Positions 14,206 to 58,989 of a DNA stretch of 64,000 nucleotides are shown in pieces. Location: contig OZ260665.1 of the NCBI GenBank assembly GCA_965285935.1, positions 5,394,001 to 5,458,000 on the forward strand. The letters run 5' to 3'. The translations under genes were made by a program, and so were the position numbers. Under the pieces are notes generated by a model. It was not told where the DNA came from. It was given only the letters and a program-made list of their open reading frames with translations, and made no database searches. Each line of letters opens with the position of its first letter. Positions within the stretch are counted from its first letter, which is position 1. The stretch comes from Ophelia neglecta. Taxonomy: Eukaryota.

Positions 14206-15499
14206 GGTTGCGATGATATGTATCTCAGCGCAAATTACGACAGAATGCATTTATCCAAAACAGCATAGATACTTTAAATGTATGCATAACTTTAACGTTC
14301 GTAACTTTTGATATGATGTTCGTGTGTGTGTGGGGGGGGGGGGTGTTTGGGGAGCTATGGAAATAGTTCATAACTCTTGATATGGCGTGTTTGTGTGGTG
14401 AAGGAAGGGGGGAAGTGGTGGTGTGTAGTTATATTTATTTGTATACGCTGTGTGAGGGGGGGGGGGGGTAGGTTCTATTTCAAGAAGTGGTGAGTAATTT
14501 TGCCTTATAATGGTGTAAATATGTGTATCCTTCCGAATGGTTGGATGGATGAAGGGGCAATGAGAAGAGGGGCTATGTGAAAGGTAGCAGCATGCACTAT
14601 GCGGGGAGAGCATAATGTGGAGGGTGGAGGGATGGGCCTTTGCTAGGGGACAGAGTTAATAATATGCTAAGGATACGTCATTTTGTTTTAATCATTAGTG
14701 AATAAGCATACGAAATATGCCTTATAGTAGAAGAATATAGGTTCCTCACTAATATATCGTATGGAACGCTCAGTATGATAGCACACCTAAGAAGGTAGTT
14801 CCAATATCGTACACCAAGTCGACTGCTTGCCGAAGTATGTTTATATTATTGCTATGGCCCAAAGCTGACCGTCAGGACCACCCACCTACCGTAGAGCAGA
14901 TCATATCAAAACATGCCATGCATATTTCCTCTAACATGCCTCTCTGTGTACATAACAACCCTTTGTTTCAAAATCCTGGATCCTACCAGATTTTGGTGGC
15001 AACTAAATAGCATTATATATTTTCCCACGCAAAATACACCAGCCATTCATTTTAAATAAAACCTTGCAAGTCGCTGTGTGAGAGTTCACTGCACATATAT
15101 AAATAGGTTTAATATAGCCAGGTACTGTGGCAGTGCACACTACTTGATTGTCAATACAGTTAAGGTAGACTCTAACTGTTGGCATGATGCAAGCTATATA
15201 CACAACACATGCATGCGTATATTTGAATACCTATAACCACACAGATTAGCAAAACAAGCCCAATGCACACTGATTTGTCACTGAGCGACCCTCAATAGTC
15301 TTGACAAAGACTATTACAAACCCAGAGATGTTCGCGAAATATTCGTTGCCCAGTATTGCTAGATGATTTCCTCTGGGAATTTTCGGCTTAATAAGGAAGT
15401 AGGGAGAACAGGACTTTTCCGGATTAGGCTTTTGGCACGCCTCTCATGAAAATGTCGATCTCTCAAAAATGTTTCGTTTACAGTAGTCATCTCATGTCG

Positions 15500-15961
15500 C
15501 CAGTATCGGTGCTGCCCTGTATCGGGGCCACCCTGTCGACGCTGGCTGTATCGGCGCTGACTGTATCGGCGCTGGCTGTATCGGCGCTGCCTGTATCGGC
15601 GCTTGCTGTATCGGCGCTGGCTGTATCGGCGCTGCCTGTATCGGCGCTGGCTGTATCGGCGCTGACTGTATCGGCGCTGACTGTATCGGCGCTGGCTGTA
15701 TCGGCGCTGCCTGTATCGGCGCTGGCTGTATCGGCGCTGACTGTATCGGCGCCGCCTGTATCGGCGCTGCCTGTATCGGCGCTGCATGTATCGGCGCTGC
15801 CTGTATCAGCCCTGCCTGTATCGGCGCTGCCTGTATCGGCGCTGCCTGCATCGGCGCTGCCTGTATCGGCGCCGCCTGTATCGGCGCCGCCTGTATCGGC
15901 GCTGGCTGTATCGGCGCTGCCCTGTGGGCGCTGCCGTATCGGCGACGCCTGTATCGGCGCT
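15500..15961. repeat. 15-bp minisatellite (ctgtatcggcgctgN), about 30 copies
   Basis: Directly visible; explains the overlapping low-complexity ORFs in the track. Confidence 0.97.
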
Positions 15962-24600: not shown

Positions 24601-26099
24601 TCAAGAGTTCAGCAGCCGGGAAGTGGCTACATAGGACAACTGCAGGAAATGTAGACTAAAAAATGGTGAGATGACAACATAGAACAATATTTATCGGACA
24701 AATATCCATGAAAAATCTAAAAAAAAAAACAAGAAAGCATTTGTATGTTCTTGAGTGTAAAACGTCTGCAAATACGCGTGAAATGTGCGATCGCGATCGG
24801 AAAAAACGCCTGAAAACAACTGTGGAATAGGCGAATTTGAATCAGGAACTCAACGTCAACAAAGTGCGTGGAACGTTCTGAAAATGCGCGTGAAATGTGC
24901 GACGAAGAATTGGAAAAATCGGTAATTAAAAGACCGGAAATACGCGTGAAATATGAGAATATGAAGCGGAAATAAAATGTCCGAAAATACCGAATGCGAA
25001 TCGCGAATATATTCCATATACAACAACGACCCCTTGTTATATTCCGAATCAAAGTTAATTAACACAAAAACCGAGACATTAGTTTTGCGACAAAACTGTA
25101 GTTCTAAAATATAGTAGCAGTGATTTTAGAAATCTTTTGTTTCTGTTAGTGTTTTGCCCACACAAAAATGTACAAGGAAACTAGAGGCCGGGTTAGGGCT
25201 TGGGTAAGGAATCAGGCTTTAGGTATCGGGGGCCACGGTATTAGGTACCAGGGGCATTGAGATGAAATATCACACTTCCTGTATGAATGGAATAAGTGGA
25301 AGGGTAGATGGGGGTTCTCCCTTACTCTTCCATAGCAAATGTAGGCTGAGAAAACTGGGAACCTTTCACAGATTAAAAGTATAAGAAAATACACCTATAA
25401 TAGACACGTATAATACCTAGAAATCCGAAAATGCACCCATACACAGATTAACCACATAAATAAGCTGAAAATAAATAATACATAATATAACAATTCTGGG
25501 TGTTTAACACTATATATACTTTGTTCACAAGATATTCGTTTGGTTCTTTATATATATATTATTACAATTGTTTAGTATTACATTCTTCTAGTTCTTTATA
25601 AATATTAATCATATATAGTGGACAAAGTTCATATAGTGTTAAACACTCAGCACTAAGTCGTAATGTCTGATGCGGAGATTACATACACCAATTCGGTGTC
25701 CTTCTCCTTCTGTCATGCAATGTATTAATTGCGTCAGTACTGTACAAGATTGTATCTAATATCATTGGGATGAAATTGTTAAATGGCAATAAAACTTAAC
25801 AACATCAATTCTCAGTATCCAAGTTAGCACTTTTTCAGGCTCTTAAAGGCGGTGATGGCTGTCCGACGGCGGTTCTGAGGTTACCAGAGTCGACCACTAT
25901 GCGAAGTTGTGCTGGCCTGTCTATAGTAGGCCTATCAGAGACATATACAGTTAGCCTATATGCAAACACATAAATAATGTTGTAAATTTATGCGATATTT
26001 AACCATGACTAATTGATGTTTGTTTAAAGATAGCGTGCGAACTGCAAAAATGAGGCAGTCACACTTTCGATACAATATGGAGGCATTCCAGTACAGACA

Positions 26100-26248
26100 T
26101 GTCAAATCGAAAAAGTCAGTTAATCAAAAAGGTAAATTAATCGGGAAGGTCAAATCGAAAAGGTCTATTAATCCAGAAGATCAATTAATCCAGCAATTAA
26201 CCCAGAAGGTCATTTATTCGAGAAGGTCAATTAATCCAGAAGGTCAAG
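26100..26248. repeat. Short diverged repeats (gaaggtcaattaatcca), likely subterminal repeats of a DNA element
   Basis: Several copies of ggtcaattaatc variants. Confidence 0.55.
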
Positions 26249-29019
26249 CTATCGTGAGTTTGCGTGACACTCAGAAGGGTGTAAAGTTTAAGAGCCCCTG
26301 AGCGATTAATAAAAGGACAACACAAGAAAAGATTTTGAAATCAAAGGTGGTTATTTTTCCCGTTTACTTTCCTTTGCCACTTTACCTGCGAAGCACACAT
26401 AAAGCTTACCAAATATGGCCTTTGACACCATTGTACGGTGTTAAACAGTGCAGTGATGGCAGACCGAGTGGTCGACAAGGAAGTTCGAAAAATCAAGTAT
26501 TATAGGCGCATATTACTAATTTGAGGTAACTTGCATAAGGAGAATACAGCAACAAAATATACAAAATTAATTAACAATAAAATCTATAAATAAATTAAAA
26601 GTCTTAACTACCTGAAATAAAAAGGGCTCAGCACTGTAAACGTGATATTGTCATTACTGTATGCGACATATGTTTAACTTTTGTCTTGAAACAAATATAC
26701 AAACAGTATAATTAAAGACAACTAAACGTAAGTCTAATTCACTTTGTATTAAATCAAAAAGTAATATATCCGCATTCAACAATTATTTTCAAACTATACA
26801 ACATATTCATGAATCAAAAAGACTGTGCCCACGTTTTTCTTTTCCATGAATTTGCTGCTTGTTTACAGTACATGAACCCCCTGAAACATACTATTTAGTT
26901 AGTACAATTAGGGTTGGGGGTGGAGAAGAAGGGGGTTCCCTATAGCCTATTCGATCATTTCAGTAAATTCAAACCAGGGAGTGACCGACAGATAAGACAG
27001 TATAACAGCACACGACATCGTGTGGCTAACATGCGTTATATACATACCTAAAACACCTATAATCGGTCCCAGAACATTCATAACGGGTAATTTTCCTAAT
27101 ATACCTAACTATTAATGCTACCGAAGGAAGACCATGCCTATGTACGATGACTGGTTAGTAAAAAAATACATTAAACAACATTCAGTGACAAAAGTCATCG
27201 TAATATATGTAACTTGCTTCCTGACTATCTGATATCTAGCTAAGGGACAAGAACTATATAGAAGTCCACGGACATTGTGCTCAGCTTGTAATTATGGATG
27301 AGAAACCCAGCCTTTGCATGCGGACCTTAAGCCCTTTTCATATTTAACTACCATAGTGTGATAGTTTATCCCTATTAGTTGCCAATTCCTGTACAAAATG
27401 GGTTCAAATGGTGAAAACGTAAAATTCAAGGTCACAAAAAACCAGCTGGAACTCTATATTCTATTGGTTGTTCATACATTTGATGGGTATATCTTCCACG
27501 GTTAAAACACTGGAAGATGGTGAATGAAACTGTATTTCAATATAATTGAAACAGAAATACAAGGTCAAATTTAAGGTCAGTGGTATACGCACGTTTTAAA
27601 TGTGATTCCCTTGTGGTGGTGAATTCGCTAGAAACATTTATCTTGCATTTTTAGGTCATCAGAAGGTCACTAAAGGGGTGCATTTCGTTAGGGCTCTGAC
27701 AATAAGGAAGGTCATTTGGACTGTAAAGATATCGGAAGGCCATAATAATAATGCATTGCCTCATTAACCTTGTATTCTTAAACCATAAGAAGGTCAAGTA
27801 TGCAGTGCATTGTCCTCGTTAAGTCCTCAGAAGATCATGTATGCGGTGCATGTTATTGTTACGTCATCAAACCTTCACGTAAGCTGTGCATTGACACATT
27901 TACCTTGCTTTTTTATGATATGAAGTAGCTTAAGGCTGTTGGATTTCAATTGTGGTGAACAGATGGATAGACCGAGTATTGAATGTAGCAACGTCCAGGC
28001 GGGCGCCAACATGATTAGATGAGCTTGGCTTGCCAAGCAAACTGAGCTCATTATGGAAAATATAATGAAGGAAAACAATAAAATTGGGCACAAAATGTGT
28101 GCCTCTACACATGAAAATCCATGAAAATTTAAGAAAACTACGAGCTAATGGGACTGTGTGAATATTTGATATTTAAATTCCGAGAGGCGGGATCAGCAAA
28201 TTATTAATTACACATTTACCCATGCGATATGGATATTTACCTATATCAAAATCATGAAAGAATATATTCTCCTGTCAAACTTTATACACAACTTAGACAT
28301 AACAAAAATAGAATTAACATGACCAATTGAAAATTCGAAAAGGTCACATTGATATTTAAGATTAAACTAAGGTAACCCTAAGTCTAATCATATAAACGGA
28401 AAATAAATGTTAAAATCACTCGTTCGTCGGTTGGAGGTACATGTATTGCATTAAAACGATCAGCCGGCCGCCACAACATAAAAAAAGGAAACAAGAGATT
28501 AATGAAAATACGTTTGGCAGTGTGCCATGTATTCAAAGTAAACAGGTTTTCATTCAGAAATGAATAAATGGTAACCGAATTTAAAAGTCACTATCAATAA
28601 TCCAGAAATGACAATATCCTCACAAAATGTCGTCAAAATTGAATCAACAGCGCCGAGGTCAAAATTGGCGGTGTGCTATATAATATCAATTCTTCCAAAG
28701 TGTTCTAAACCTCTAGGAATAAACCAGACTAACAAACTTTCAGCACACCTATGTAACAGCTCGGGGGTGAAGGGGGGGGGGTTACTACCCCTTGCCATTG
28801 GTTGCTGTGCTTCACCCAAGTGAATATGGGTCCAATAAAGACCTGAATCTATAGAAAAATAGAGTCAAATAGACTCAAATAGAGCTGAAAATACTGGTCA
28901 AAATTAGCTGTCTCGTTAACAAAGGTCAAAAGATTCGTTTTTCGAATAAAAGGGTCAAAAAGGGATGTAGAGGCACACATTTTAAAATAAAAAGCAGTTA
29001 CCTCTTTTCCCAGACAGCT

Positions 29020-29265
29020 CCTTTGTATCCACTTACCGGCTGTTCCATGCAGCATTGAGCTGCCGTACATCAGGGCATGGTACTGCAAGTAGGTCCTCAG
29101 CGAAAATGGTAAGCTGTGGTCCAAACTGCTTGGGTTATTTTATCCGATCCACGCAGCATTGTGCTACCCTACATCATTGCATGGTGCTGCCAGAAAGTTC
29201 TCGGGTGAAATGGTAACCTGAGGTTCAAACTGCTAAGGTTATTTTATCCGATCCACGCAGCTTGG
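29020..29265. repeat. Diverged tandem repeat of about 103 bp (about 2.3 copies)
   Basis: aaatggtaa...caaactgct..ggttattttatccgatccacgcagc is repeated. Confidence 0.7.
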
Positions 29266-30398
29266 GGTGCCAATACGACCAGCTAAATGTTGACAGCCAA
29301 GTAATAACCCCCAAACAACCAACCAACCAAACTCCTTGTGTTGTTCTAAGCCTGAAATCAAAAAGCAATATAATTACTAATCAATAATCAATATTCACAT
29401 TATCACATTAAGTGAGCCTGTGTACAGTGTACCGCTTTGCAATTACGTACAGTGGGCTAAAATGCATGTTAAGCAAAAATAATTCAGTCACGTGACTGAA
29501 AATTACTAGTTCAGTTCATTGCTTCAATAATTTATCAGTTACGTTTGGTTATTGCCTGTGCACTGTACGCTCCCATGCTTTGATTATAAACAACATTAGA
29601 TATATACATAGAGAAAGCGACAAGAAGAGAACACGCGGACGTATGCGGAAACAAATAGTAAATTTTGAACTGGATAGTAATGTACTAGGACTAAAACTTT
29701 TGAACTATGGATTGGTGAATGGACAAAGATTAGCTGGAAGTTATCTTTATCTGAAATTATGGCTGCGCTCAATGGTAAATATTGATTCTTTTGGATTAAT
29801 CTACAAAATTTGGATACCGCTGACATGCATTCACACTTTGGCAAGCTCTCGAGTCACTGATGCCAATTACGACTATTCATGCCGTACTCACTATGCCCTA
29901 TGCTAATTGCCATTAAAACATCATGCAATAGCGCGCCAGGATAAACTAAGAATTGTACAAATGTCTACTGCCAACGCTAAGAGGAAATCCGAAAATATAT
30001 CTCCTGTTTCCGAGACAACAGAAGGCAAGCGCCTCAACACGTCAAACCCCCCCCCCCCCCCGCCTCCATTAAAAATAGACATGTCTGAAGCAAAGGACAC
30101 TGCTAGCTTAAACGGAGATGAGACGATGGACTGCCTACGGGAGTAAGGAATAGTGTCGCTCTCATACCAACTCTCGTTACTGATATCACAGAACTCAAAA
30201 GGTCGGTGATCTTCCTTAGTGAAAAATATGAGGAACATCTGAAGAAAATCTCCAGCCTCAAAGCTAGCAATGCTAAGCTCACACAATCAGTCAGCACATT
30301 GGAACACGATAATAATATACTACGAATCAAAGTTCTAGACCTTGAACAATACTCAAGAAAAAACAATGTGGAAATCAGAGGGATGCCGGAAAACAACA

Positions 30399-31860
30399 GG
30401 TGTATACCTTCGTGATCCCATCCCATATAAGATAGGTGTATACATTTGTGATTCCATCCCATATAAGATAGCCGTATACATTCGTGATTTCATCCCATTC
30501 GTGATTCCATCCCATATAAGATAGCTGTATACATTCGTGATTCCATCCCATATAAGATAGGAGTATACATTCGTGATTTCTTCCCATATAAGATAGCTGT
30601 ATACATTCGTGATTCCATCACATTCGTGATTCCATCCCATATAAGATAGCTGTATACATTCGTGATTCCATCCCATTCGTGATTCCATCCCATATAAGAT
30701 AGCTGTATACATTCGTGATTCCATCCCATATAAGATAGGAGTATACATTCGTGATTTCTTCCCATATAAGATAGCTGTATACATTCGTGATTCCATCCCA
30801 TATAAGATAGGTGTATACATTCGTGATTCCATTCCATATAAGATAGCTGTATACATTCGTGGTTCCATTCCATATAAGATAGCTGTATACATTCGTGATT
30901 CCATCCCATATCAGATAGCTGTATACATTCGTGATTCCATCCCATTCGTGATTCCATCCCATATAAGATAGGTGTATACATTCGTGATTCCATTCCATAT
31001 AAGATAGGTGTATACATTCGTGATTCCATTCCATATAAGATAGCTGTATACATTCGTGATTCCATGCCATATAAGATAGGTGTATACATTCGTGATTCCA
31101 TCCCATATAAGATAGGTGTATACATTCGTGATTCCATTCCATATAAGATAGCTGTATACATTCGTGATTCCATCCCATATCAGATAGCTGTATACATTTC
31201 GTGAGATTCCATCCCATATATGATAGGAGTATACATTCGTGATTCCATCCCATATAAGATAGCTGTATACTTTTGTGATTCCATTCCATCTAAGATAGGT
31301 GTATATATTCCTGATTCCATCCCATATAAGATAGGAGTATACATTCGTGATTCCATCCCATATAAGATAGCTGTATACATTTCGTGAGATTCTATCCCAT
31401 ATAAGATAGGAGTATACATTCGTGATTCCATTCCATATAAGATAGCTGTATACATTCGTGATTCCATCCCATATAAGATAGCTGTATACATTCGTGATTC
31501 CATCCCATTCGTGATTCCATCCCATATAAGATAGGTGTATACATTCGTGATTCCATTCCATATAAGATAGCTGTATACATTCGTGATTCCATCCCATATA
31601 AGATAGCTGTATACATTTCGTGAGATTCTATCCCATATAAGATAGCTGTATACTTTTGTGATTCCATTCCATATAAGATAGGTGTATATATTCCTGATTC
31701 CATCCCATATAAGATAGGTGTATACATTCGTGATTCAATCCGATATAAGATAGGTGTATACATTCCTGATTCCATCCCATATAAGATAGCTGTATACATT
31801 TGTGATTCCATCCCATATAAGATAGGTGTATACATTTGTGATTCCATCCGATATAAGATA
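30399..31860. repeat. 36-bp satellite (about 42 units) inside the LINE
   Basis: Unit (gg/gc/ga)tgtatacattcgtgattccatcccatataagata, with occasional shortened 17-bp and +2-bp variants. Confidence 0.98.
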
Positions 31861-34426
31861 AGAGAAGATTTAAATCTTAGTCCCACCCTGACAATTATTT
31901 TGACTGTTTGTTTGTTGAAATACCTCCTGTCTGTAATACGAAACCAGTAGTCATTGGGACAACATATAGGTCTCCAAGTAAAATAACAATTCTGATCTAA
32001 CTACTTCCATTGAAGAAAGAATTAACCTAATCGATAGAGAACACAAAAGCTGTATACTCTGTGCGGACATGAACGTTGACCTATTGAATAGCACTACAAA
32101 CACAGAGACTGGATTGTATCTTGACATGCTCATTTCAAACAGTTTTGTTCCGCTGATCACTCTCCGCACCAGTGTAACCACAACTTCCGCCGCACTTATT
32201 GACCATTTATTTCTTAAACACGATTCTTCCGCCAAATACACCGCGGGAACATTGCTCACAAAATTCTCTGACCATTATACTAACTTTTTATTCGTCCATG
32301 AAATGAAATCGAGCGAGTCACGGGCCCCAAAGTTTGTTAAGTACAGACCAATAACTGAGGCTACCGTAGCCTTGTTTAACGATGGATTAGGGGAAGTGGA
32401 ATGGAATTTAGTCCTGGGCAAGGCCCTCGATGACCAAAACAAAGCCTATGATATTTTTCTTGGAACTTTTGATTCAATATTAAATGACACTATACCAGAG
32501 AAAGTCAACCGGTTTAATAAATGTAAGCATAAATTGAATGAGTGGATTATTTATGGCATACTCAGATCTACACATATCAGAGATAATTTAGCCCGACAAC
32601 GTGTAAAAAGAAAGGATTCCCCTGATTTTCCTAAAATTAATATTAAATTTCTCAACTACAGAAAAATACTCAATGAAAACTGGCCAAAGTTCCTATTGGG
32701 GGTCAAAATTTGAGAGTGTGAAAGATAATATAAAGAAAACATGGAACAATATACGGCTTGTCAAATTACATTCAAACAATTTTCTTTGACGCGAATGGTA
32801 ACAAAATCACCAAGACGGAGGATATTGCGCAAAACTTTAACATTTTTTTCACAAACATTGGTCCAACATTAGCCGAGAGTATCACCTCAACTAAGAATCA
32901 TAATGTATATCTTAAAAACCCTTCAGTTAACAGTATATTTATGTCGAAAACTAACCGTGAAGAAATTATAAAAATTGTTGATAGAATAAAAGCAAAAACG
33001 AGCTGCGGATTTGACAACATCTCGCCTAAGTTACTATAGATGGAGATTCACCCTATTTGTGATGCATTGGCAAATATTTTTAACCGTATGTTGACATAAG
33101 GTGTCTTTCCGAAGTCTGCAAAAATAGCACGGGTATTACCCATATCTAAGGGGGAGGACAATTCTTTGTTCTCCAACTACAGGCCAATTTCATTACGACC
33201 ATCCATATCTAAGGTCTTCGAGCGCCTAACCTACAAGAGGATTGTTAATTATCTAAATAAAAAACAAATTACTTCACGCCTCCCAATATGGCTTCCGTGC
33301 TAATCATTCAACGGACCATGCTGCCATCGAGCTGGTAGACTTTGTGGCCGAAGGCCCTGACAAAAAGGGCTTTGTCTCTAGTATTTTCATTGACTTATCA
33401 AAACCTTTTGATACTCTTGACCACCCTATACTGCTGAATAAGTTTCAATATTATGGAATAAGAGGGAATTGCAGGAAACTTATTTGCAGCTACCTATCAG
33501 ATCGTTTCCAGTACGTATATTTTAATGGAGTAAGCTCAGAGTACTTGCCTCTAAGATGCGGTGTAACCCAGGGGTCTATCTTGGGCCTTCTTATTTGCGG
33601 ATTACACCAGCTTAATGTTTGTTAATGAAGACTAAATAGATCTATATTATCAAATGAACACAGAGTTGGAAACGATATATCAATGGATGATGGCGAACAA
33701 ACTTTCACTGAATATTAAGAAAACAAAGCACATGCTCTTCCAATTTGCGAATAAACCTTTGCCTTTTATCATGACACTTTGACACTTATTTTGGACGGAC
33801 GACTTGTGGAGCAGGTCTCCGAGTTTGAATTCTTGGGAACCTAACACGACGAGAATCACAGCTGGAAGACTAATACTGATATAAAATGTAAAAAAGTAGC
33901 CCAAGTGAATGGGGTGTTAAATAGAATAAAATTCAAATTACCCATTTATGTTCTAAAGCAAATCTACTTTGCTCTCGTACATTCACAATTAACATACGGC
34001 ATGATAATCTGGAACAACGAATGCTGTAAACAAAACCTCAATCGTTTATCTTTGTTGCAAAAACGTTCTGTAAGGACTATTGCAAAGATAACTTACCTAG
34101 CACACACTGAACCCATTTTTAAAACTTATGGCATCCTTAAAATAGAAGATTTGTTTCTCCTCATGGGTATGCGTTTGTATACTAAAGCCACATAAAATCG
34201 AACGCCTGATTATATTACTGAAACACTGTGCGCTAACACCACAAATCACCCACCCAATACGTGCTTTAAAAGTTCTATTAAACCATACAAAATGAGGACT
34301 AATATTATAAAACAAACCATTGCCTATAAAATACACCACATAATCAACTTCCTAAAAAATAACTTTCCTATTGACACAAACCGCTGCTACAATATAAAGA
34401 GCACATTGCTCGGCCGATATAGTAAT

Positions 34427-34850
34427 AGGTGTGTCAAAAAACGATGTTATGTATGTCAACGGTAGCACACTCTGTATAGTGAGATCTGTGTGTGGGTGTG
34501 TGTGCAACGCTTGTACAATATTGTGAATATATATATGAGTGTCAAAAAACAATGTTATGTATGTGAACGGTAGCACACTCTGTATGGTGAGATCTGTGTG
34601 TGGGGATGTGTGTAACGCGTGTACAATATTATGAATGTATATATGTGTGTGTCAAAAAAACAATGCTATGTATGTGAACGGTAGCACACTCTGTATGGTG
34701 AGATCTGTATGTGGGGGTGTATGTAACGCGTGCACAATATTATGTACATATATTGGTGTGTGTCAAAAAAACAATGCTATGTCTGTGAACGGTAGCACAC
34801 TCTGTATGGTGGGATCTGTGTGTGGGGGTGTGTGTAACGCGTGCACAATA
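34427..34850. repeat. Tandem repeat of about 110 bp x4 spanning the LINE ORF2 stop and 3' UTR
   Basis: gtgtcaaaaaac..tg.tatgtatgt.aacggtagcacactctgtat at 34431, 34539, 34649 and 34760. Confidence 0.92.
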
Positions 34851-35843
34851 CGGTAACTGTGTATATATTGTATGTATTTTTCGTGTGTGAGTGACGGTTA
34901 GAGACGTGTAAAGTTATAAGTGAAAATGCTGCGTGGCTCTGATGTGTGGGAGTGATCATGCGTAAGCGCGGGAGTGCATTTAATTATGTGTGAATGTGTG
35001 GATATATGATATGGCTGTCAATGTGATACTTTGCAGGCTGTAGAATGTGGTTACGCACAAACTATGAATGTTTATATTCTCACCATGAGCTTACTTATCA
35101 AGCAAGTATATATTTGTCAATCCAGTGTAATCCTCAAATGTGACACTCGAATTAAATGAACATTATTTGTCCTAGCTGTAGAATTATATCATAATAAAAA
35201 TACCAGTCGATTACAATTTAACTTAACCCAAATGAATATATATGTTAATTCCTATATACAATAAACATAATAATGCTTCCTTGTTGCTAAGTCCTATTGT
35301 GGACTGTTTATTAATCGTTTATTTCTCTCAATTTCTGTTGTAGCTAATATTTATTAGTGCCTACAATTCATATGTGTAAGGGCGTATAGTACCAAACGGC
35401 TATGCTATAGCTGGCGTCCTGCAGCACACGGTATGTCTAGCTGTTTATCTTTTTACCTCTGTGTATTTGTTTCATGTCTTGCAAATAAAAGACCTACTAC
35501 TACTAACATTCACATTAAATATACGCTTTACAAATAGCCTTTCTTCAAGGCATAACCTCGCGCCACTCCCGCCCCCTAGCTAGGTTATGTCCTGGTCTGG
35601 CGGAGGTGGCGGGGGGCGGGGGGGGGGGGGTTACTCCTGTACTTTGCTGCACATTGCTGTATTCACAACAGTGGCATGTGGTCTTAATATACAGGTGGTA
35701 TTTAAGGCAGGTTTCACTATACCAGTAGGTTTTGTTGTGTAATCCCCCCCCCCCCCTCCCCGAGGATAACCTCCCTAGAGAAAGGTTCATTTACAAATTT
35801 CGTATCAGCAAGCACTGCTAGTACATTCAGGGTTGTTGTTCAC

Positions 35844-37896
35844 TTTCTAATGAATTGATTGATTTGGGCAAGCTATTGTACTACTTTTTGACAATGGATG
35901 GCTGCTATTGATTGATACAGGGCCTCTAGAGAGAATAAGTCCCGTTTAAAAGTGTATTATTTTCATTGTATACATGTTCAATCATCGCTTGCGACTCAGA
36001 GAAAGTCACTCGAGGGCGAGCAGAAGCAATATATAATCAGTTTGGCTTTACCCCTCGCCTACTTCACTCAGCCAAACACGATGATAACAATGTAAACACC
36101 GGTAGCCTACGCCTACCCCGCTTATCAGTACATATTTCTATGTAACCGAGAAATGCTTACTGGAATTCGCTCTTAAAAGTGCTTCCAGGTTATAATTACA
36201 AACAAAATATTTGCCTACCATGTATTAAGGGAAAGCTCCGCTATTTAGTCAAGTAGCTGCCTTGATCAGGGTGAGCGTATTTCGCAATATGTCTCCTGGG
36301 GTAGCGAGTCAGTATCAGGTTTGGTCGGCGAGACTGTATGGCCTCGCTGGCTGTAGTGCAGCAGCACTCGTTATACAATGCCGATTGTGTATGCTTCATT
36401 TCATTGATTAAGGGGGGGGGGGAGATTTCCAGGTGCCGGCACTCTAGATAAAAAAAAGGATATGATAGTTCCCATATTTGTAAAGTACCCATTTTCACAT
36501 GATTTCAGGTAAAAATTATCCTTTTTCTAATGAATTAATTGATTTGGGCAAGCTATTGTACTACTTTTTGACAATGTATGGCTGCTATTGATTGATACAG
36601 GGCCTCTAGAGAGAATAAGTCCCGTTTAAAAGTGTATTATTTTCATTGTATACATGTTCAATCATCGCTTGCGACTCAGAGAAAGTTACTCGAGGGCGAG
36701 CAGAAGCAATATATAATCAGTTTGGCTTTACCCCTCGCCTACTTCACTCAGCCAAACACGATGATAACAATGTAAACACCGGTAGCCTACGCCTACCCCG
36801 CCTATCAGTACATATATCTATGTAACCGAGAAATGCTTACTGGAATTCGCTCTTAAAAGTGCTTCCAGGTTATAATTACAAACAAAATATTTGCCTACCA
36901 TGTATTAAGGGAAAGCTCCGCTATTTAGTCAAGTAGCTGCCTTGATCAGTGTGAGCGTATTTCGCAATATGTCTCCTGGGGTAGCGAGTCAGTATCAGGT
37001 TTGGTCGGCGAGACTGTATGGCCTCGCTGGCTGTAGTGCAGCAGCACTCGTTATACAATGCCGATTGTGTATGCTTCATTTCATTGATTAAGGGGGGGGG
37101 GGGAGATTTCCAGGTGCCGGCACTCTAGATAATAAAAAAGGATATGATAGTTCCCATATTTGTAAAGTACCCATTTTCACATGATTTCAGGTAAAAATTA
37201 TCCTTTTTCTAATGAATTAATTGATTTGGGCAAGCTATTGTACTACTTTTTGACAATGTATGGCTGCTATTGATTGATACAGGGCCTCTAGAGAGAATAA
37301 GTCCCGTTTAAAAGTGTATTATTTTCATTGTATACATGTTCAATCATCGCTTGCGACTCAGAGAAAGTCACTCGAGGGCGAGCAGAAGCAATATATAATC
37401 AGTTTGGCTTTACCCCTCGCCTACTTCACTCAGCCAAACACGATGATAACAATGTAAACACCGGTAGCCTACGCCTACCCCGCCTATCAGTACATATATC
37501 TATGTAACTGAGAAATGCTTACTGGAATACGCTCTTAAAAGTGCTTCCAGGCTATATTTACAAACAAAATATTTGCCTACCATGTATTAAGGGAAAGCTC
37601 CGCTATTTAGTCAAGTAGCTGCCTTGATCAGGGTGAGCGTATTTCGCAATATGTCTCCTGGGGTAGCGAGTCAGTATCAGGTTTGGTCTGCGAGACTGTA
37701 TGGCCTCGCTGGCTGTAGTGCAGCAGCACTCGTTATACAATGCCGATTATGTATGCTTCATTTCATTGATTAAGGGGGGGGGGGGGGGGGGACATTTCCA
37801 GGTGCCGGCACTCTAGATAAAATAAAGATATGATAGTTCCCATATTTGTAAAGTACCAATTTTCACATGATTTCAGGTATAAATTATCCTTTTTCT
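35844..37896. repeat. Near-identical tandem triplication of a unit of about 680 bp
   Basis: Periods of 680, 682 and 686 bp; few substitutions; the internal G-run is 11, 12 and 18 nt; tttct is shared at all junctions. Confidence 0.97.
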
Positions 37897-38044
37897 TCCG
37901 GAAAACGCTTATTTTTCATTGTAAAAAAACACAATTTTCCATAAAAAAATAATCAGTGGAAATTGTATGACCCCCCCCCCCCCCCACCCCCTGTCAGAGG
38001 CCGATCCAATTCTCTGATCCCTTATCCGCTGATGCTTTGACCAC

Positions 38045-38556
38045 CCCCCCCCCCCCCCGCCCGCCAAATCTTCTCTACCGGATTAAATTTCATAAATGCA
38101 TATTACCTTTTAACCCTTCCATTTATTATGCACTTTTAATATAAAAAATGGAGAATTAAAATCTGTAGGGATGTTTCATTTGGTTTATAGCTCAAAACCA
38201 CTACTCGTTATATTGAAAACAACACTGTCTATAAAAACAGAAATGGTACAAAATTATTACATAATGTGAATCATCACTGGGTAATATCCCTAATGACATT
38301 TAATCAAAGTTAAATCTATATTTTACTACCAACGGGCTTCAACCGAGAACAATTTTTCTCTAAAAGCAATATTTAAGAAGTTTTATGATTAATTAAAAAA
38401 CTTCACCCTAGTGATGATACACATTATACAATATTTGTCTTTCCATTTTCAGAATGTCCCTTGATCCAGGTAAGGAGCATGATAAGTGGAAGGGTTTAGA
38501 GGTAATATAAATTTATGAATTTAACCCGGTAGAGAGGATTGGGCTGTGAGGGGGGT
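38045..38556. mobile_element. Foldback/MITE with long imperfect inverted arms
   Basis: ctctaccggattaaatttcataaat..atattacctttta-acccttcca (38073 onward) is mirrored at 38473-38545; the inner ataatgtgaatcatcactgggt pairs with accctagtgatgatacacattat. Confidence 0.75.
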
Positions 38557-40592
38557 TTAGCTGGGTATAGTAGTCAGGGCACATACCCTAAACTGACAAG
38601 GAACCTGAATCTCGTATCTTTTATAATATTATCAATCGTACATTCGTTAATAAAACAGATGAATCGGAAGTAGCTCTGCTCAATATATCAGGTATTTATT
38701 CATTTAACTTATCAAAATTGGTGTCAGGTCTGTAAATAACTCCAATGATAGCGCCACTCTGAGTATGAACACTTTCTTTTCTCAGTTCAATGAAACAACC
38801 TTCAGTTGTGTGGAAGCCATTGGAAGTTACCAGTTTGCCCGTATTCGGGGCTGCAACTTCTTGTCGGTTTGCTTATCCATGTGTCGGTTTTGTACATCAG
38901 ATAATTCTTAAACTTTGCTATTGGGGATGTCATTAGGGTCTCTCAGGTGTAAAATGGTGGATAAATCTAACATAATGTCTGAAGTATTTTTTTAATTATC
39001 CATATGTAAATATATTTAGGTTTAAATGAGCAGCAAGAAGTGTGATCGATACGGAAGACATCTTTGTACAGGACAGGGACAAGTACATTCGAAATAAGAC
39101 ACAAAACCAACTCCTGTTTATGCAGAAATAATAAGTTTATTCATTTATTTATAAAACTAGTAAATCTAGGTATTCATAGAGGCGAATGTTAACGCCACAT
39201 GGACCACACAGTCTATAGAACAGTCCATAGTAGAGTCTTGGCTATGACACCGGTCTATTAGGTTAAACCGTGTGGTATTAGGAAAATACGGAACGGCAGT
39301 GGCAGTCTAGACCATACATAAGAAAACATCTTGTCCCGTTGTGTAACAATATTAAAAGCCGGTTATTGATTTAAAAAGGGGAGGTGCGAGAGGGTATGCG
39401 GAGGCATTTCTGAATGGCATGGAAGAAAACAATCGTCATCAAGGCTGGAGCTAGTCTTTGGGTTAATTTTAGGGTACGGGAAAGGGTTGGGGCAGGGTAA
39501 TATGGTTGTAGTGTACTGTCATAATCTCGCTTTTAATCAAAAGTCTCTTAGTGTATAAAGCATATTGTATATGGAATTGTACTAAATGATCAAGCCATAC
39601 CTCTGATATGCGCAGAGGTACTTGTATCAGGATGGATATACGAAAAACACAAAGCAAAATAATTTTAAATATAATATATTTTAGGGTGGGGGTGGTCGTG
39701 AATGATATCCGGTGACCTAAGACGTAGATTTGTCCAAGTACGTGAAATATTAGAGGGAAACTATGGGAGATTTGTTTTTAGGACCTCCCTAGGAAGGTGT
39801 CACAAATTTGTGACAGCCCCCTCCCCTCTTATGGTAAATGCTAGTGCCATCAGCCGAGATACGGAAAATCGCGTTTCAGTCTTGGATAATTTGGAAGGTA
39901 AGAAAATTAGGCGGCCATCATCCCCGCAGCCACGGTCATATGTCTCCGTCTATCTCTGCGAAATTTAGAGGGCATGCATGCTTTGTCCTGGGATGTGATA
40001 AGTAACCATGCCTATCGTAAATTTTACGTTTCCATTTAACTATTTAATTTGTGATTTAAAAGGATTTTACAAAGCCTCTAATTTTAAAGATGATAGTAAA
40101 ATTCATAACATCCTGTTTTGGATGACCTTTTTGGTTCGGATGACTTTTTTGGTTCGTGAGGAAATGAGAAAGCTCGGAAGGATGATAAACGCCATTTTCC
40201 GAATAGTGTCAGCCGTAATTAATATCTGCATTCATTTAACACATCACTTGACAACCAGCTGTATGCCAAAAGAAAAACAAATTGAGGTCATTGTCTTAAT
40301 TGACCTACATTCAGTTTTCTTAAGAAATATATTCCGGCTGAACTATCGAGATTTTTCTTGAACTTTTTAATATTTTTGGTCTAAGTTGGATTGCTTTGCA
40401 TTATAAATGATAATTTTACTGTGTATTGCAAGAAATATAAGTTTATAATTGTCAAACTAAAAAAGAATGTTCCTCGGATGACTTTTATAGTTTTCGGGAG
40501 GAAATTAGAAAAGCTTGGGAGGAAATGAAAAACTTCTGTCCCTTAATATTATCACCTGGATTTAACGCCAACATAAATTAAATAAATTACGT

Positions 40593-41606: not shown

Positions 41607-42848
41607 TTATTCCAGCTTCACATATCCATCATTTCCAACCATTTCTGTGGAGCCTTCCACTTCCGTAGGTTTAGAGCGCCACCACTCGAGAAAGGGTCTC
41701 ATAATATTTCCCAGAACGAGCAATGATATGCCCACGAATTCCATCCAGTTCCGATGCCCTGGCTGGATGTGGTTAAGTATTGTATACTGCAGTATACCCT
41801 GCACTACTAACTGCAGACTTAGAATCAAAGACGCTGCAAACACCGATATGCGTTGTAAGGAGTAGTTGAAAGGTATGGATGCTAAACCTAAACACAGGCT
41901 GTGAGCAGAAAGAAGTCCCCAACATCCGGCATTGGACGGGAGAATTGGGAACTCTAGGACAAACATTAGGACCATTGAAACACCCGTAGAAAACACTCCC
42001 GTCCAAAACGAAATCACAGTGTAATTTATTTCGGTTAGACGAACATTAACTGTTACGTCGCAAATAAAACGAAATACGCTAAAGACAACTATTAGGATAT
42101 ATCCTCGAGTTACACCGGAAAGTCCTGTATCGTGGTGTTCAGTCCTATCTAACATCGGTTTATCCTTCCACTTAACACTGATGTCCATTGTAACATTACT
42201 AGAGGGTTCATTATCGCCATTGTGGTCAACACATATTGGGTTGTGAGTCTCAGAGAATTCCAAGTTTGAGTAATTCAGACTATGGTTTTGTGCTATACTC
42301 GGCTGCGTCGAAAGTTCTAGACTAATGTTGCCTAAGGTATATGGTGTTAATAAACTGAATTTGGATATTTGTTGCGTGCTCTTTGATGCGGGGAAGCCCA
42401 AGAAGGAGGGCTGTGTTGTCAGTAGTATCCCGGCTGTACAAATTAGTAAGGAAGTAGCGGTACTGGAATAGCAGGTTTTATATCTGACTGCCTCGAAAAC
42501 TGCGCTGTATAGCAAAACCAAGGCAAACCCTACTCCAACAACAACCGTCAGGGGGAGCAGTGGTGCAGCCGCATATAGTGCAAAGTTATTTATACATGCG
42601 GTGGCACATACCAATACCATCCAGCCTATCAGTCTTCTATCCACAGTCGGGACCTGCCGTGTTACACACAGAGCTATGGCGCTTATCAGCGATGTGGCGA
42701 TAAATCTGGCCACGTTCAGCTCCCAGTCTCCAAGGACGCCCTCTATCGCCTGAGCAGAGGCCGTGCTGGTTGAGATTAGCAGCGCCACAGCTAAGGCGGC
42801 AAGGCTCCCTTTGACAAAGTCAAGTGACTGCTCCTTGATGACACACAT
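41607..42848 (-). CDS. SLC35G-like / EamA (DMT superfamily) multi-pass membrane transporter, 413 aa, single coding exon
   Basis: About ten hydrophobic segments in two halves (QAIEG...WELNVARF; YAAAPLLPL; GILLTTQPSFLG; QLVVQGILQYT..PGHRNWMEFVG). Splice acceptor at 42889-42890 and an in-frame stop upstream of the ATG. Clear paralog of 57023-58279. Confidence 0.88.
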   Translation of the reverse strand: MCVIKEQSLDFVKGSLAALAVALLISTSTASAQAIEGVLGDWELNVARFIATSLISAIALCVTRQVPTVDRRLIGWMVLVCATACINNFALYAAAPLLPLTVVVGVGFALVLLYSAVFEAVRYKTCYSSTATSLLICTAGILLTTQPSFLGFPASKSTQQISKFSLLTPYTLGNISLELSTQPSIAQNHSLNYSNLEFSETHNPICVDHNGDNEPSSNVTMDISVKWKDKPMLDRTEHHDTGLSGVTRGYILIVVFSVFRFICDVTVNVRLTEINYTVISFWTGVFSTGVSMVLMFVLEFPILPSNAGCWGLLSAHSLCLGLASIPFNYSLQRISVFAASLILSLQLVVQGILQYTILNHIQPGHRNWMEFVGISLLVLGNIMRPFLEWWRSKPTEVEGSTEMVGNDGYVKLE

Positions 42849-44024
42849 GTCGCGGAACGTTTTCTAGAGAAGAATCTTTGGATGGAACCTGAATGGAAGT
42901 ATTCAAAGTGTAAACAGCCTGTGTCCTGCCACGCGAGCAGGTCGAATTCCTATTAGGTAGGTTAGCGACGTCTATGAGCCATTTACAGGCAACTCTAATG
43001 GAAGGGTAGGTAGGTATGTTATGTGTCAGGGTTTCACCGTTCACTAACGTTATGCCTCTCCGTGATGGCAAACTTGACAAGGCAAGTTTTATAGAACCGA
43101 GTCTTCCGATGGAACCTTAGAGAGAAAAACACTTAGTATGAGCAGGTAAGACATGCTATAGATGGAAATATATACAGGATAATATCTAATTTGTTTAGCT
43201 GTCTATAGCAGTCAGGGCACATACCCTAAACTGACAAGGAACCTGAATCTCGTATCTTTTATAATATTATCAATCATACATTCGTTAATAATACAGATGA
43301 ATCGGAAGTAGCTCTGCTCAATATATCAGATATTTATTCATTTAACTGATCAAAATTGGTGTGAGGACGTCTGTAAATGACACCAATGATAGCGTCCCTG
43401 TGAGTATGAATACTTTCTTTTCTCAGTTCAATTAAACAACCTTCAATTGTATTGTTAATAGTATCTAAATCCTGTCTACTACTGTGAAGAATATCATTTT
43501 CATATCAATAGATACACACAGTATGAATGATGTAACACTCCGCAAACATATATTACAATTATAAACATCCACATTGGATATTTGTGGAATACCTGTTCAA
43601 AATTGCATTAACATCTGGCATACAAAGAATGCAATATAAATTCAGTTGTTAAGTTAATATAAATTCACACATAAAAAACACGATATATACACACACATGA
43701 AAACCAGTAAATGGTATCACGAATAAAGACAGAACAGCGGCCGCATTACTTAATAGTAAGAATGCTTAATTTATAAGTTAATGCCCGTTATAACACACCA
43801 CGTGACACTTGAAGTTGAAGATGGCAAGGGATGGGGTCTACAAGTGAAGGTGGGGGTACCAGGGAAGAGGGAGATCAGGGGGGCGGGGGTGGGGGGTGGG
43901 GGGGCGTGGATTGTAATGCTGTTGGAGAGATGGAGAAAGCACACAGAATTTACCAAGGTATCCCGAAAATGTGTATAGGTTAATTTTACGGTTGACACAT
44001 GAGCAACAAATTCGTCTGTGTGTG

Positions 44025-44272
44025 TGTTGTATCACCATAATTGGTCTAGGTTATTATCAGGCTGACACGACAACACACTCTCCTCTGGGCAATGCTTATA
44101 CCAGCTAGAGTGTTTGTTGTAACACCATAATGGGTCTAGGTTATTATCAGGCTGACACGACAACACACTCTCCTCTGGGCAATGCTTATACCAGCTAGAG
44201 TGTTTGTTGTATCACCATAATGGGTCTAGGTTATTATATGGCTGACACGACAACACACTCTCCTCTGGGCAT
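44025..44272. repeat. 90-bp tandem repeat, about 2.8 copies
   Basis: tgttgtatcaccataatgggtctaggttattatcaggctgacacgacaacacactctcctctgggc at 44025, 44115 and 44205. Confidence 0.95.
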
Positions 44273-44673
44273 TGTTTATTATATCAAAGCTGTGTATATG
44301 TTATTGGAAGCCGCATTGGTTGATTCATTGTCGAACGGCCACTAGATATAAAACATTATTTCGCTTTAGGAAGCAAACAGGAGTAACGAGTGTTAGCAAA
44401 AAAATGAGAAAAAGCAAGTTATCTAAATTTCGAATGGATTTTAAAATGCAAATATAGGTTGGCAATAGGGTGTTGACAGGAAATTATTATTCTACTTTAA
44501 ATCATTAGGCACCGACGGGGAAAAACTATAAGGGAAGCGTATGGTGTTAGGTCCTGGGTCCTCCAATACAATCCTCTTACTATAACTCCCCACGGACAAA
44601 TGATCCATTAAACTATGGGTACTCCGCTTTGGATGCATGTGTTTTTTTGGTTAACGAGAATTAATAGTATTAC

Positions 44674-47434: not shown

Positions 47435-48039
47435 ACTAACCTGTGTGACGTTAAAGAGGAGGTCAGAGACGTCACATGCCTGTAGATTCACATATATACC
47501 TGCAGTTATCCTAAGATAGGCCGCCTTTCGACCTGTACACCTTTTATCATTCATTGTTGATAGACTGGGAAGTCGACCGTGTCGAGACTGACCGGCAATA
47601 AATGTTCTAGCTACAGTATTTGTACCTGTGTACGTGGTTGGTCGTTACCGAGCGTAAACACAGAGCGATGTGATCGAAGGCCTCCTGTCTAAATCTTTGT
47701 ACACTACTACAACAAGGTGAAAAGAGGTGGGAGGGAGGAGGGGGAAGGATGGACATAATTTCTAGGTCGGAAAAGATGATCCGGGACAGGGGATTACTGT
47801 AACGGAGCGCAGGGCGTGGCGGGGATAATATGGGAGAGGGGGTGGGGAGACGGCCCCCATTGTCAACCGACGGAGAGACCTGTTTTCTCCCAGAGTAGGG
47901 CGTTCCTTATATGGAGAACACGCCTATCCCCAACCCCCGATGGTAGGTTCCACGTGCTCTTTTCTGAACCCCCATAATAATCTCTAGACCCCATAGTACG
48001 CCTGGCTGACTTTAATACAGCAGCGAAGTATGGATAACC

Positions 48040-48600
48040 CTCTTCCCTTGGACCCCCAGCCTCCTTGACCACCCCCTTCCCATGGAACCCCACCCTCCTT
48101 GACCACCCCCTTCCCTTGGACCCCCACCCTCCTTGACCAGCCCCTTCCCTTGGACCCCCAGCCTCCTTGACCACCCCCTTCCCTTGGACCCCCAGCCGCC
48201 TTGACCAACACCCTTCCCATGGAACCCCACCCTCCTTGACCACCCCCTTCCCTTGGACCCCCAGCCTCCTTGACCACCCCCTTCCCTTGGACCCCCAGCC
48301 TCCTTGACCACCCCCTTCCCTTGGACCCCCAGCCTCCTTGACCACCCCCTTCCCATGGAACCCCACCCTCCTTGACCACCCCCTTCCCTTGGACCCCCAG
48401 CCTCCTTGACCACCCCCTTCCCTTGGACCCCCAGCCTCCTTGACCACCCCCTTCCCATGGAACCCCACCCTCCTTGACCACCCCCTTCCCTTGGACCCCC
48501 AGCCTCCTTGAACCCCCCCCCCCCTCCTCTTCCCATGGAACCCCATCCTCCTTGACCGGCCCCCCCCCTCCTGTCCATGGACCCCACCCTCCTTGACCAC
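48040..48600. repeat. 34-bp C-rich minisatellite (about 16 copies, two unit variants)
   Basis: ccttggacccccagcctccttgaccacccccttc and ccatggaaccccaccctccttgaccacccccttc. Confidence 0.96.
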
Positions 48601-57022: not shown

Positions 57023-58279
57023 TTATTTCAGCTCCATATAACCGTCAGTTCCATCCGTTTGTTCCGAGCTTTCCTCGATTTTTGGTTCAGATCGCCACCA
57101 ATCGATAAGAGGCCTTAGGATATTTCCTGTGGTTATCAGTGAGACGCCAAGGATCTCCATCCAGTTCCGGTGTCCAGGCTGGATGTGCCTCAGGATTGTA
57201 TATTGCAATATGACAAGCAGGACTAACTGTAGGCTATTGATTACAGACAAGGCGAACACATTGATGCGTTGTGCGGCATAGTAGAAAAGCAAGGCTGCTA
57301 TTGCAAGAGAAAGACTGTGAGCAGAAAATAGTCCCCAGCATCCGGGGTTCGATGGAAGTACTGGAACCTCAAGAGTTAACATCGGTATCAGAGAAACACA
57401 TGTGGAGAAAGCTGCCGGCCAAAAAAAAAGTACAATGGCACTCAAGTTATTCAGTCGACTGTTAATTGTGGCATCTGTTATGAAAATACACGTGCCCGCT
57501 ATAACTATCAAGATATATCCTCGAGTGACTTCAGAAAGTCCTACATCTTGGCGTTTCGACCCATTAGATATTGCAGTATAATTCCAATTTACATCCACAG
57601 TCATATTTTTGTGCGAACTGCCTCCATCCTTGAACACGCATATTGGTGTGCGCCTCGGTGAGTATGTCATGTTTTTCTCCAAGAAATCCGGCCAATAGTT
57701 GTATGCTGAGTTTTTTTGTGGCGAAATGCCCAAGGAGACAGGTGATGCTGAGCTGTTTGGCGCCGATATGCCCAAGAAGGAGGCTGTCAGTGAGCTGCTA
57801 GGCGCCGAAAAGCCCATGAACGTTGGCTGCACTATAAGTAGTATTCCGACTGTACAGAGTAAAAGTGTAGGGACTACACTTGGGGAACATGTTCTCTGTC
57901 TAACAGCCTCGTATACTGCGCTGTACAAATACGACAAGACAAGTGGTAATCCGGCAAGAACCGCCAGAGGGAGCAGCGGTGCTGCAGCGTAAGTGGTAAA
58001 GGTAAGTCCACAAGCGGCGAAACACAACACAATGACCCACCCTATCAGCTTCTTCTCCACGGTCGGTACTGTCCGTGTTATACCCAGCGCTAGAACGGAC
58101 ATCACCAACTGGACGGTGAACCGGGACATATTCAGCTGCCAATCTCCAAGAGCGCCCTCTATCGCCTGAGCAGAAGCCTTGCTAGTGGAGTATAACGCGA
58201 CCGCGCCCAAGCCAGCCAAGCTGCCCTTGACAGAGTCACGTAATTCCTCATTAATACCTCTCATGTTACTCTTGGCCAT
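57023..58279 (-). CDS. SLC35G-like / EamA (DMT superfamily) transporter paralog, 418 aa, single coding exon
   Basis: Same motifs as the 41.6-kb gene (KGSLA; SAQAIEG.LGDW; YAAAPLLPL; LPSN.GCWGL.SAHSL; QPGHRNWME). The true start is probably the ATG at 58279 (MAKSNM), because a tttctttacag acceptor at 58297-58298 interrupts the longer track ORF. Confidence 0.9.
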   Translation of the reverse strand: MAKSNMRGINEELRDSVKGSLAGLGAVALYSTSKASAQAIEGALGDWQLNMSRFTVQLVMSVLALGITRTVPTVEKKLIGWVIVLCFAACGLTFTTYAAAPLLPLAVLAGLPLVLSYLYSAVYEAVRQRTCSPSVVPTLLLCTVGILLIVQPTFMGFSAPSSSLTASFLGISAPNSSASPVSLGISPQKNSAYNYWPDFLEKNMTYSPRRTPICVFKDGGSSHKNMTVDVNWNYTAISNGSKRQDVGLSEVTRGYILIVIAGTCIFITDATINSRLNNLSAIVLFFWPAAFSTCVSLIPMLTLEVPVLPSNPGCWGLFSAHSLSLAIAALLFYYAAQRINVFALSVINSLQLVLLVILQYTILRHIQPGHRNWMEILGVSLITTGNILRPLIDWWRSEPKIEESSEQTDGTDGYMELK

Positions 58280-58989
58280 GACACATCCAATGGAGACTGT
58301 AAAGAAAACAGCAAGTGTGTATTCATGCTGGCACACATATACATCTTAAGCTTATAGAAGGATGATAAATTATATTGTTAAAGTTTGTATTAATTGTCAG
58401 GTATGTTTGTGTTTATTGTCGAGTGTATTTGTAGATGGCATCGTTGTATCGAACAACATTGTGTCGAAGTAAGAGTTTATAAAATAGTAATTTATGATAT
58501 ATTAAGAATGGCTCAGAACATTAGATTAATGTTAATATTTTAATTTGTCCTCAATAGCAATAATTTGACCAACAATTTTTGCACTTCTAATAGGTTTTAT
58601 TTTCCAGTTCTAATGCCCTTCTCAGCTTGTCCCTCGAAATATAAATTGTTCATTTGTTCAATATTTATATCACGCTTTTTTAACCGTTAAGAAGAACCGG
58701 TTCGTGCTGGGAACATATAATTATAGTGGAAAAGGGGAATAATGCTTTATTGAGAACTCACTTGAATATTTTTGTGATTTTGCGAGAATTATTTTTGTAG
58801 CTGGCTAACTGTTTAGGGTTTTTTTGGATGTGTACACTATGATGTTTTGTGAAATCACACAATAGAGCCATTTCGAAATTTACTTTTTTTTCTAGAGAAA
58901 TTAGGAAAATATAACATTTAACAACGGGTTTGGTAATTAAGTCGGTCACTTAACAGCTAACCTGCTTTAAGAATATCCCGGGCTCTTCA

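Follow-up and report, generated by a model that had tools for sequence, protein, structure and literature searches.

A minisatellite probably grown in situ from an endonuclease-coding segment of one decayed LINE copy in Ophelia neglecta

We analysed a 64,000-nucleotide stretch of the Ophelia neglecta genome (GenBank assembly GCA_965285935.1, contig OZ260665.1, called C8 below, positions 5,394,001 to 5,458,000 of the forward strand), hereafter the window, to whose first letter the plain coordinates below refer. The window holds a tandem array of 36-bp units inside a degenerate copy of a long interspersed nuclear element (LINE). The array is, with high probability, a minisatellite derived from a transposable element (TE) that grew in situ within this one decayed LINE copy, from twelve codons of the endonuclease encoded by its second open reading frame (ORF2). 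The features concerned are listed below; here and throughout, a slash within a sequence marks a junction.

30399..31860, + strand: minisatellite array of 38 monomers (from Tandem Repeats Finder (TRF), monomer decomposition and consensus)
29610..35503, + strand: degenerate low-copy LINE with an apurinic/apyrimidinic endonuclease (APE)-type ORF2, made up of 5′ untranslated region (UTR), truncated ORF1, array, broken ORF2, 3′ UTR and (CTA)n tail (from homology to other copies)
30164..30398, + strand: remaining ORF1, a coiled coil up to ..NNVEIRGMPENN (from translation and weak coiled-coil Pfam matches)
30394..30402, + strand: deletion joint ..AACAG/GTGTATAC.. (from the left joint of the window copy aligned to copies C12b, C12c and C1)
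31861..34465, + strand: ORF2 remainder with frameshifts and stops, comprising the endonuclease from REDLNLS, the reverse transcriptase and a C-terminal CYVC motif (85-87% identity to sister copies)

The array is 1,462 bp long and, when cut at each unit start, falls into 30 monomers of 36 bp, five of 53 bp and three of 39 bp. TRF reports a 36-bp period at 30496-31860 (36.8 copies, 80% matches, score 1585) and an additional 2.8 copies at 30398-30498. The measured extent of 40.6 unit lengths is close to the 'roughly 42-fold' amplification proposed by an earlier reading made from the letters of the window (the sequence-only reading). The consensus unit, GGTGTATACATTCGTGATTCCATCCCATATAAGATA, corresponds to 12 codons of the endonuclease and reads GVYIRDSIPYKI in frame 1 of the + strand; units are 92% identical to one another in pairwise comparison and 95% identical to the consensus (4.8% differing). 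Each 53-bp monomer is a 36-mer with an internal 17-bp duplication (CATTCGTGATTCCATCC). These monomers shift the + strand frame, with stops present from the third unit on, and because of them the array is not one continuous + strand ORF. At the right edge REDLNLSP follows the last unit, with DNYFDCLFVEIPPVCNTKPVVIGTTYRSPS readable beyond a 1-base frameshift, and at the left edge the first unit is directly preceded by the coiled-coil ORF1 fragment ending NNVEIRGMPENN (GMPENN). TRF, monomer decomposition and translation thus all agree with the arrangement described in the sequence-only reading: an in-frame 36-bp unit that runs into REDLNLS and, beyond a frameshift, into the remainder of the endonuclease, with its left edge at GMPENN.

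Comparison with other copies gives good support to the proposal that the unit belongs to the LINE family's own endonuclease sequence and multiplied in place. We compared individual copies, in place of the family consensus that had been suggested. The sister copies are three on C12 (C12a, C12b and C12c), one at C8:74.38 Mb, a 5′ fragment at C1:135.6 Mb and a 71%-identical copy at C9:30.2 Mb. The C12 trio lies at ~30.6 kb spacing (G000:C12:42413800-42477100, L021-L023), and each member carries different internal deletions; since they have the same 3′ flank, the three represent a single insertion that later underwent tandem segmental duplication. The comparison therefore draws on two independent sister insertions (C12, now three copies, and C8) plus the 71%-identical C9 copy. 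In every sister that reaches the endonuclease there is one and only one 36-mer, set within ...GGTGGTGGCATA/GGTGTATACATTCGTGAT(C/T)CCATCCCATATAAGATA/AGAGAAGATCTAAACCTTAGT..., which translates as GGGIGVYIRDSIPYKIREDLNLS and places the unit between GGGI and REDLNLS. The unit thus lies at the homologous position of five sister copies; on the right side their flanks are continuous with that of the array, which runs on colinearly into ORF2. The array consensus differs from the single sister units at between one position (C12 copies) and three (C8:74.38 Mb).

The same segment is single in relatives further away. In the intact ORF2 of a related family, GGGIGVYIRDGIPFKIRDDLN is found once and is followed by FVEL and IGSTYRSPS. 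The motif GGG[VL]x[IL][FY][VI]...D[LI], followed by LF[VI]E[IV] and then by IG..YR.P, is single both in intact related ORF2s and in database homologues, the more distant of which have the same motif order, once each; the sequence-only reading gave GGV, then LFVEI, then IG..YRPP as the usual order in CR1/L2-type endonucleases. We also searched the 762-Mb assembly with a 34-base unit core, allowing up to three mismatches. This gave 33 matches, 29 of them in the array and four in sister-LINE single copies, counts that are lower bounds; the reversed pattern, used as a control, gave 0 matches. A genome-wide query with 401 bp of the array matched the array locus and the sister single copies only. 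Two checks had been named in advance, namely whether the family carries the 36-mer at this endonuclease position and whether arrays occur mainly outside the family. The unit is indeed present once in individual sister copies, and neither the 401-bp query nor the core search found an array elsewhere in the assembly. The amplification of 12 ORF2 codons in place, as opposed to the insertion of a foreign satellite, consequently stands, because the sisters and the intact related family hold the unit once and in the homologous place.

The host element has well-defined ends. Its 5′ start, ..AAGCGACAAGAAGAG.., is common to the window copy, C12a and the C1 fragment, and upstream homology ends there; its 3′ end, ..AATAAAAGACCTACTACTACTA with a short (CTA)n tail, is common to four sister copies, and similarity ends there. 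All copies end ..AATAAAAGA(A/C)CTACTACTA.., a microsatellite-like tail instead of poly(A). Such a tail is compatible with CR1/L2 but is found in other LINE clades too, and is therefore non-diagnostic. The best match between the flanks that might represent a target-site duplication, ACATTAGATATA and ACATTAAATATA, was not significant, as 6% of shuffles equalled it. Fragments of the window copy and of a sister copy match RVT_1 and Exo_endo_phos weakly, below the curated Pfam cut-offs. The related family (~66% DNA identity), which has intact reading frames (C15:480731-484525, C9:5684223-5688017), has an ORF2 that matches Exo_endo_phos (2.4e-09) and RVT_1 (3.9e-34), both above the cut-offs, and an ORF1 in which PF25298 (second domain of baculovirus FP protein) comes after a coiled coil. 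An ORF2 with Exo_endo_phos and RVT_1, an upstream ORF1 and no long terminal repeats (LTRs) together make up an APE-type LINE. The nearest solved structures are human L1 ORF2p (1e-20) and R2 proteins (2e-17); because both are about equally distant, the host element is classed as a non-LTR retrotransposon of the APE type outside both L1 and R2. Pfam, solved structures, a word-based protein search and Atlas matches yielded no LINE clade label, and the CR1/L2-type assignment of the sequence-only reading goes further than what is shown, which is the architecture of an APE-type endonuclease plus reverse transcriptase.

Two further observations concern this LINE lineage. In related families PF25298 was matched in ORF1 with E values of 3.6e-17 (L008:1261-2124, C8:0.99 Mb) and 1.4e-13 (L020:2882-3793, C9:5.68 Mb), which ties the C-terminal domain of the LINE ORF1 to a baculovirus protein family. 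In addition, the window copy contains a second local tandem amplification near its 3′ end:

34429..34850, + strand: 111-bp 3′-end unit in 3.9 copies with 90% matches (from TRF)

About one copy of this unit in C12a aligns to all four window copies, and the sisters carry it about once; TRF found no 111-bp array in C12a or in the C8:74.38 Mb copy.

The left edge of the array coincides with a deletion. In C12b and C12c ~845 bp separate the ORF1 breakpoint (GMPE) from the unit, and this sequence is lost in the window copy. Past the breakpoint, ORF1 of C12b and C12c goes on as GMPEKQGENVEALV... to its stop (...DDLKLIC*), followed by a short spacer and by the N-terminus of the endonuclease (...LLNFNAQSLVKKF...VVETWLSSDLKQLVQIPGY...KKEGGGI). 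The loss of the remaining ORF1 and of the endonuclease N-terminus, which the sequence-only reading had deduced, is thus seen directly as the stretch that these two sisters keep. C12a has its own, different ORF1 deletion, and in the C1 copy unrelated sequence begins partway through ORF1. The C8:74.38 Mb sister has most of its ORF1 replaced by a ~0.9 kb (CT)n-rich microsatellite (L025:3770-4735; G000:C8:74375770-74376735), after which the last part of ORF1 returns (..ETSKVLRIQSEDDLKLIC*). In the assembly, the fusion of ORF1 to the endonuclease seen in the window was found in no other copy. In the window, ..GGAAAACAACAG is fused to GTGTATACC.., where the sisters read ..AAACAGG/GTGAAAA.. on the ORF1 side and ..GGCATAGG/TGTATAC.. 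on the endonuclease side. The joint therefore falls in 3-5-bp microhomology, AGG(G)TG on the ORF1 side and TAGGTG on the endonuclease side. The ATAGGTG microhomology is, however, regenerated at every array unit joint, so that deletion and expansion may have come in either order: a microhomology-mediated deletion could have preceded the array or could have followed it, removing an uncounted number of units. The earlier statement that expansion coincided with or followed the deletion has no support in this respect, as either order is permitted.

The internal structure of the array records much of its growth. Written as a string of monomer variants, it reads IJKADLCADABMECBBNOBEPFQGFHRACBAHSGTUVW, in which variants recur in ordered blocks: a 53-mer followed by A and D occurs twice, and so does a block that runs from a 39-mer through Q or S to G. 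The longest exact self-matches measure 129 bp (at offset 178) and 95 bp (at offset 563). Because blocks recur and long exact self-matches exist, much of the growth would have proceeded by multi-unit duplication, as unequal exchange predicts, and these block duplications are the ground on which we infer that slippage or unequal exchange enlarged the array. Both edge monomers are variants seen once in the array; the one at the start keeps GATCCC, as in the C12 copies, and the one at the end CCGATAT, as in the C8:74.38 Mb copy; they fit the usual picture of array ends that escape homogenisation. The founding unit is flanked by a 3-bp direct repeat (CATA/GGTG... and ...GATA/AGAG), which in C12c extends to a match at 5/6 bases (ATAGGT and ATAGGA) and is compatible with slippage or unequal exchange. 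Hairpin-driven slippage was considered and rejected, as shuffled sequences matched four units of the array in single-stranded DNA folding (z = -0.03).

Taken together, these comparisons suggest the following course of events. A LINE with an APE-type endonuclease and a reverse transcriptase would have inserted and then decayed. Within this one copy a 36-bp ORF2 segment, encoding the conserved endonuclease strand GVYIRDSIPYKI after the GGG motif, would have been duplicated in tandem; replication slippage and/or unequal exchange would then have brought the array to 38 monomers (1.46 kb), in part through multi-unit blocks. At some stage ~845 bp between mid-ORF1 and the unit start was lost through a joint in 3-5-bp microhomology. 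The comparisons establish where the unit came from, its place within the element, its uniqueness in the assembly, the deletion and the block structure, whereas the molecular mechanism and the succession of deletion and expansion are inferred.

Several points weigh against this account or limit it. The array length and the left joint are without independent confirmation, as the reads are short unitigs of one sample. Other arrays are absent from the assembly, but unassembled ones could exist. The 3-bp ATA border repeat is too short to be strong evidence for any mechanism of initiation. Finally, the units diverge by 4.8% from their consensus, compared with 3.8% private divergence, measured against two sisters, elsewhere in the element; the array is for this reason not obviously young. 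CpG retention gives a similar picture, with the CpG kept in 25/30 36-bp units (83%) and at 29/33 ancestral CpGs in the rest of the element (88%). As both measures are alike in the array and in the rest of the element, they leave the array undated, and it may have been evolving for much of the time since the element inserted.

The alternative that survives best, although we consider it unlikely, is that the 845-bp loss arose by splicing of LINE RNA or by template switching of the reverse transcriptase, so that the fusion was present when the copy inserted and array growth alone took place in the genome. Spliced integrated L1 copies provide a precedent for such pre-deleted insertions. The copy is otherwise full length, with 5′ UTR and 3′ end kept, and AG/GT-like text stands on both sides of the loss (..ACAGG/GTGAAA.. 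and ..GCATAG/GTGTAT..); the missing piece could be GT...AG if the progenitor had one G fewer than the sisters. The actual sequence of the sisters, however, is CAGGGTG, so that the removed piece is not cleanly GT...AG; moreover, purines predominate in the 30 bases that precede the putative acceptor (AAGAAAGAAGGTGGTGGCATAG), without a pyrimidine tract, and the assembly has no second copy with this fusion. AG/GT can in fact be read at every array unit joint as well as on both sides of the 845-bp loss. It is quite improbable that the array is the product of an unknown duplication and deletion process acting at such splice-site-like AGGT motifs, on DNA or on RNA-templated DNA; what speaks for it is the coincidence of the motif and nothing beyond.

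We then considered whether the 36-mer might form a true satellite, with large arrays that the assembly lacks and this locus as the visible tip. Satellites are under-represented in assemblies, and our search counts are lower bounds, but outside the locus all matches are single copies within LINEs. The available reads, short unitigs of a single sample (possibly the assembled one) sequenced in three runs of one study, which contain 35-44% of sampled words, also argue against it. Summed unitig depth in bins of the array is at most ~290, as compared to 10-47 in unique flanks and up to 180 in flanks common to the sister LINEs. This depth fits tens of copies, and not the thousands of a large hidden satellite, although contig depth is a weak measure of copy number. 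We therefore regard a hidden satellite as very improbable. A satellite in the strict sense has long arrays or high copy number at several loci, whereas here there is one 1,462-bp array in 762 Mb. The terms 'satellite DNA' and 'TE-to-satellite transition' used in the sequence-only reading were thus too strong, and a single 1.46-kb array at a single locus is a minisatellite rather than a satellite family. Indeed, the array has the properties of a TE-derived minisatellite: a unit within the range of ~10-100 bp (36 bp, 38 monomers, TRF score 1585), located at the homologous position of a TE copy, with the segment unamplified in other copies (four outside single matches, and once in the intact related ORF2).

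Still less probable is that the array, or its length, is an artefact of assembly. The length does rest on the assembly, being beyond the reach of short unitigs, and no listed unitig covers the left joint; loose unitig ends at 30393 run on into the ORF1 of sister copies (ACAGGGTGAAAA...), as expected from paralogues. Two unitigs (31820-31918 and 31807-31918), on the other hand, cross the right joint with zero mismatches, and several array variants are present among the unitigs. The ordered, non-degenerate variant structure with distinct edge units is also unlike the result of collapse or inflation.

That the array encodes a repeat protein on its minus strand deserves almost no credence: at 30353-31886 all three frames of that strand are open and yield mechanical ORFs of 164-228 aa (MESRMYTAILYG..., SYMGWNHECIQL..., YLIWDGITNVYS...) that persist through the frame-shifting 53-bp monomers, but the openness follows from the unit having no stop in any reverse frame, and there is no promoter, homologue or RNA evidence for such a protein (none of the RNA runs contains the stretch). 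The array is without demonstrable function and is a case of neutral local repeat turnover.

The surroundings of the LINE copy, which is intergenic, are themselves rich in repeats. Besides the 36-bp array, TRF found at least five other tandem arrays in the window, including the 111-bp one in the same LINE; the remaining ones are as follows.

1673-2311: tandem array, 59 bp x 10.8 (TRF)
15499-15961: tandem array, 15 bp x 31 (TRF)
44020-44279: tandem array, 90 bp x 2.9 (TRF)
48037-48520: tandem array, 34 bp x 14.2 (TRF)

The region is thus generally minisatellite-rich. At 35966-37507 an identical 59-aa mechanical ORF occurs three times (starts 35966, 36646 and 37328), and its recurrence at 680-bp spacing points to a ~680-bp tandem repeat just 3′ of the LINE; this period exceeds the 500-bp limit of TRF. 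Two intronless ORFs on the minus strand match EamA-like transporter domains, one of 413 aa at 41607-42848 (23.9 bits, below the Pfam cut-off of 28.2) and one of 437 aa at 57023-58336 (30.9 bits, above that cut-off). The two probably represent host paralogues that flank this repeat-rich part. An Rfam scan of 26000-40000 matched no families.

TE-derived tandem repeats, which expand through duplication on the spot, are common: among human minisatellites and satellites at least 23% come from TEs (Ahmed & Liang 2012, PMC3389668). LINE-derived satellites include chicken centromeric repeats from CR1-C and PROsat from LINE-1 (reviewed in Paco et al. 2019, PMC6947457), and LINE untranslated regions are among the known satellite sources (2025 review, PMC12628747). 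The array resembles the TE-derived minisatellites (PMC3389668, PMC6947457) in that an internal TE segment was tandemly duplicated in a resident copy and expanded locally, and in that the founding unit lies between short direct repeats, in line with the slippage and Haber-Louis models. It differs from them in that its unit comes from the coding sequence of a LINE endonuclease, and the flanking repeat of 3 bp (5/6 in one sister) is shorter than the 5-20 bp class of PMC3389668. With LINE- and TE-derived satellites (PMC6947457, PMC12628747) it shares a repeat unit traceable to a retrotransposon. Those satellites, however, are long and often multi-locus or centromeric, whereas this one measures 1.46 kb at one euchromatic intergenic locus, without sign of spread; and where the LINE-derived satellites of the 2025 review (PMC12628747) come from untranslated regions, the source here is ORF2 coding sequence.

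An endonuclease-coding unit is a small variation on the known TE-derived tandem repeats, and the array is an ordinary single-locus case of them. Current views are unchanged: TE-derived tandem repeats are common, and this array is neither spread nor satellite-sized. The founding unit, the single-copy state in the sisters, the edge units and the block-wise growth are all directly readable here, and because all these stages can be read, the array is usable as a teaching or benchmark example of minisatellites derived from TE coding sequence.

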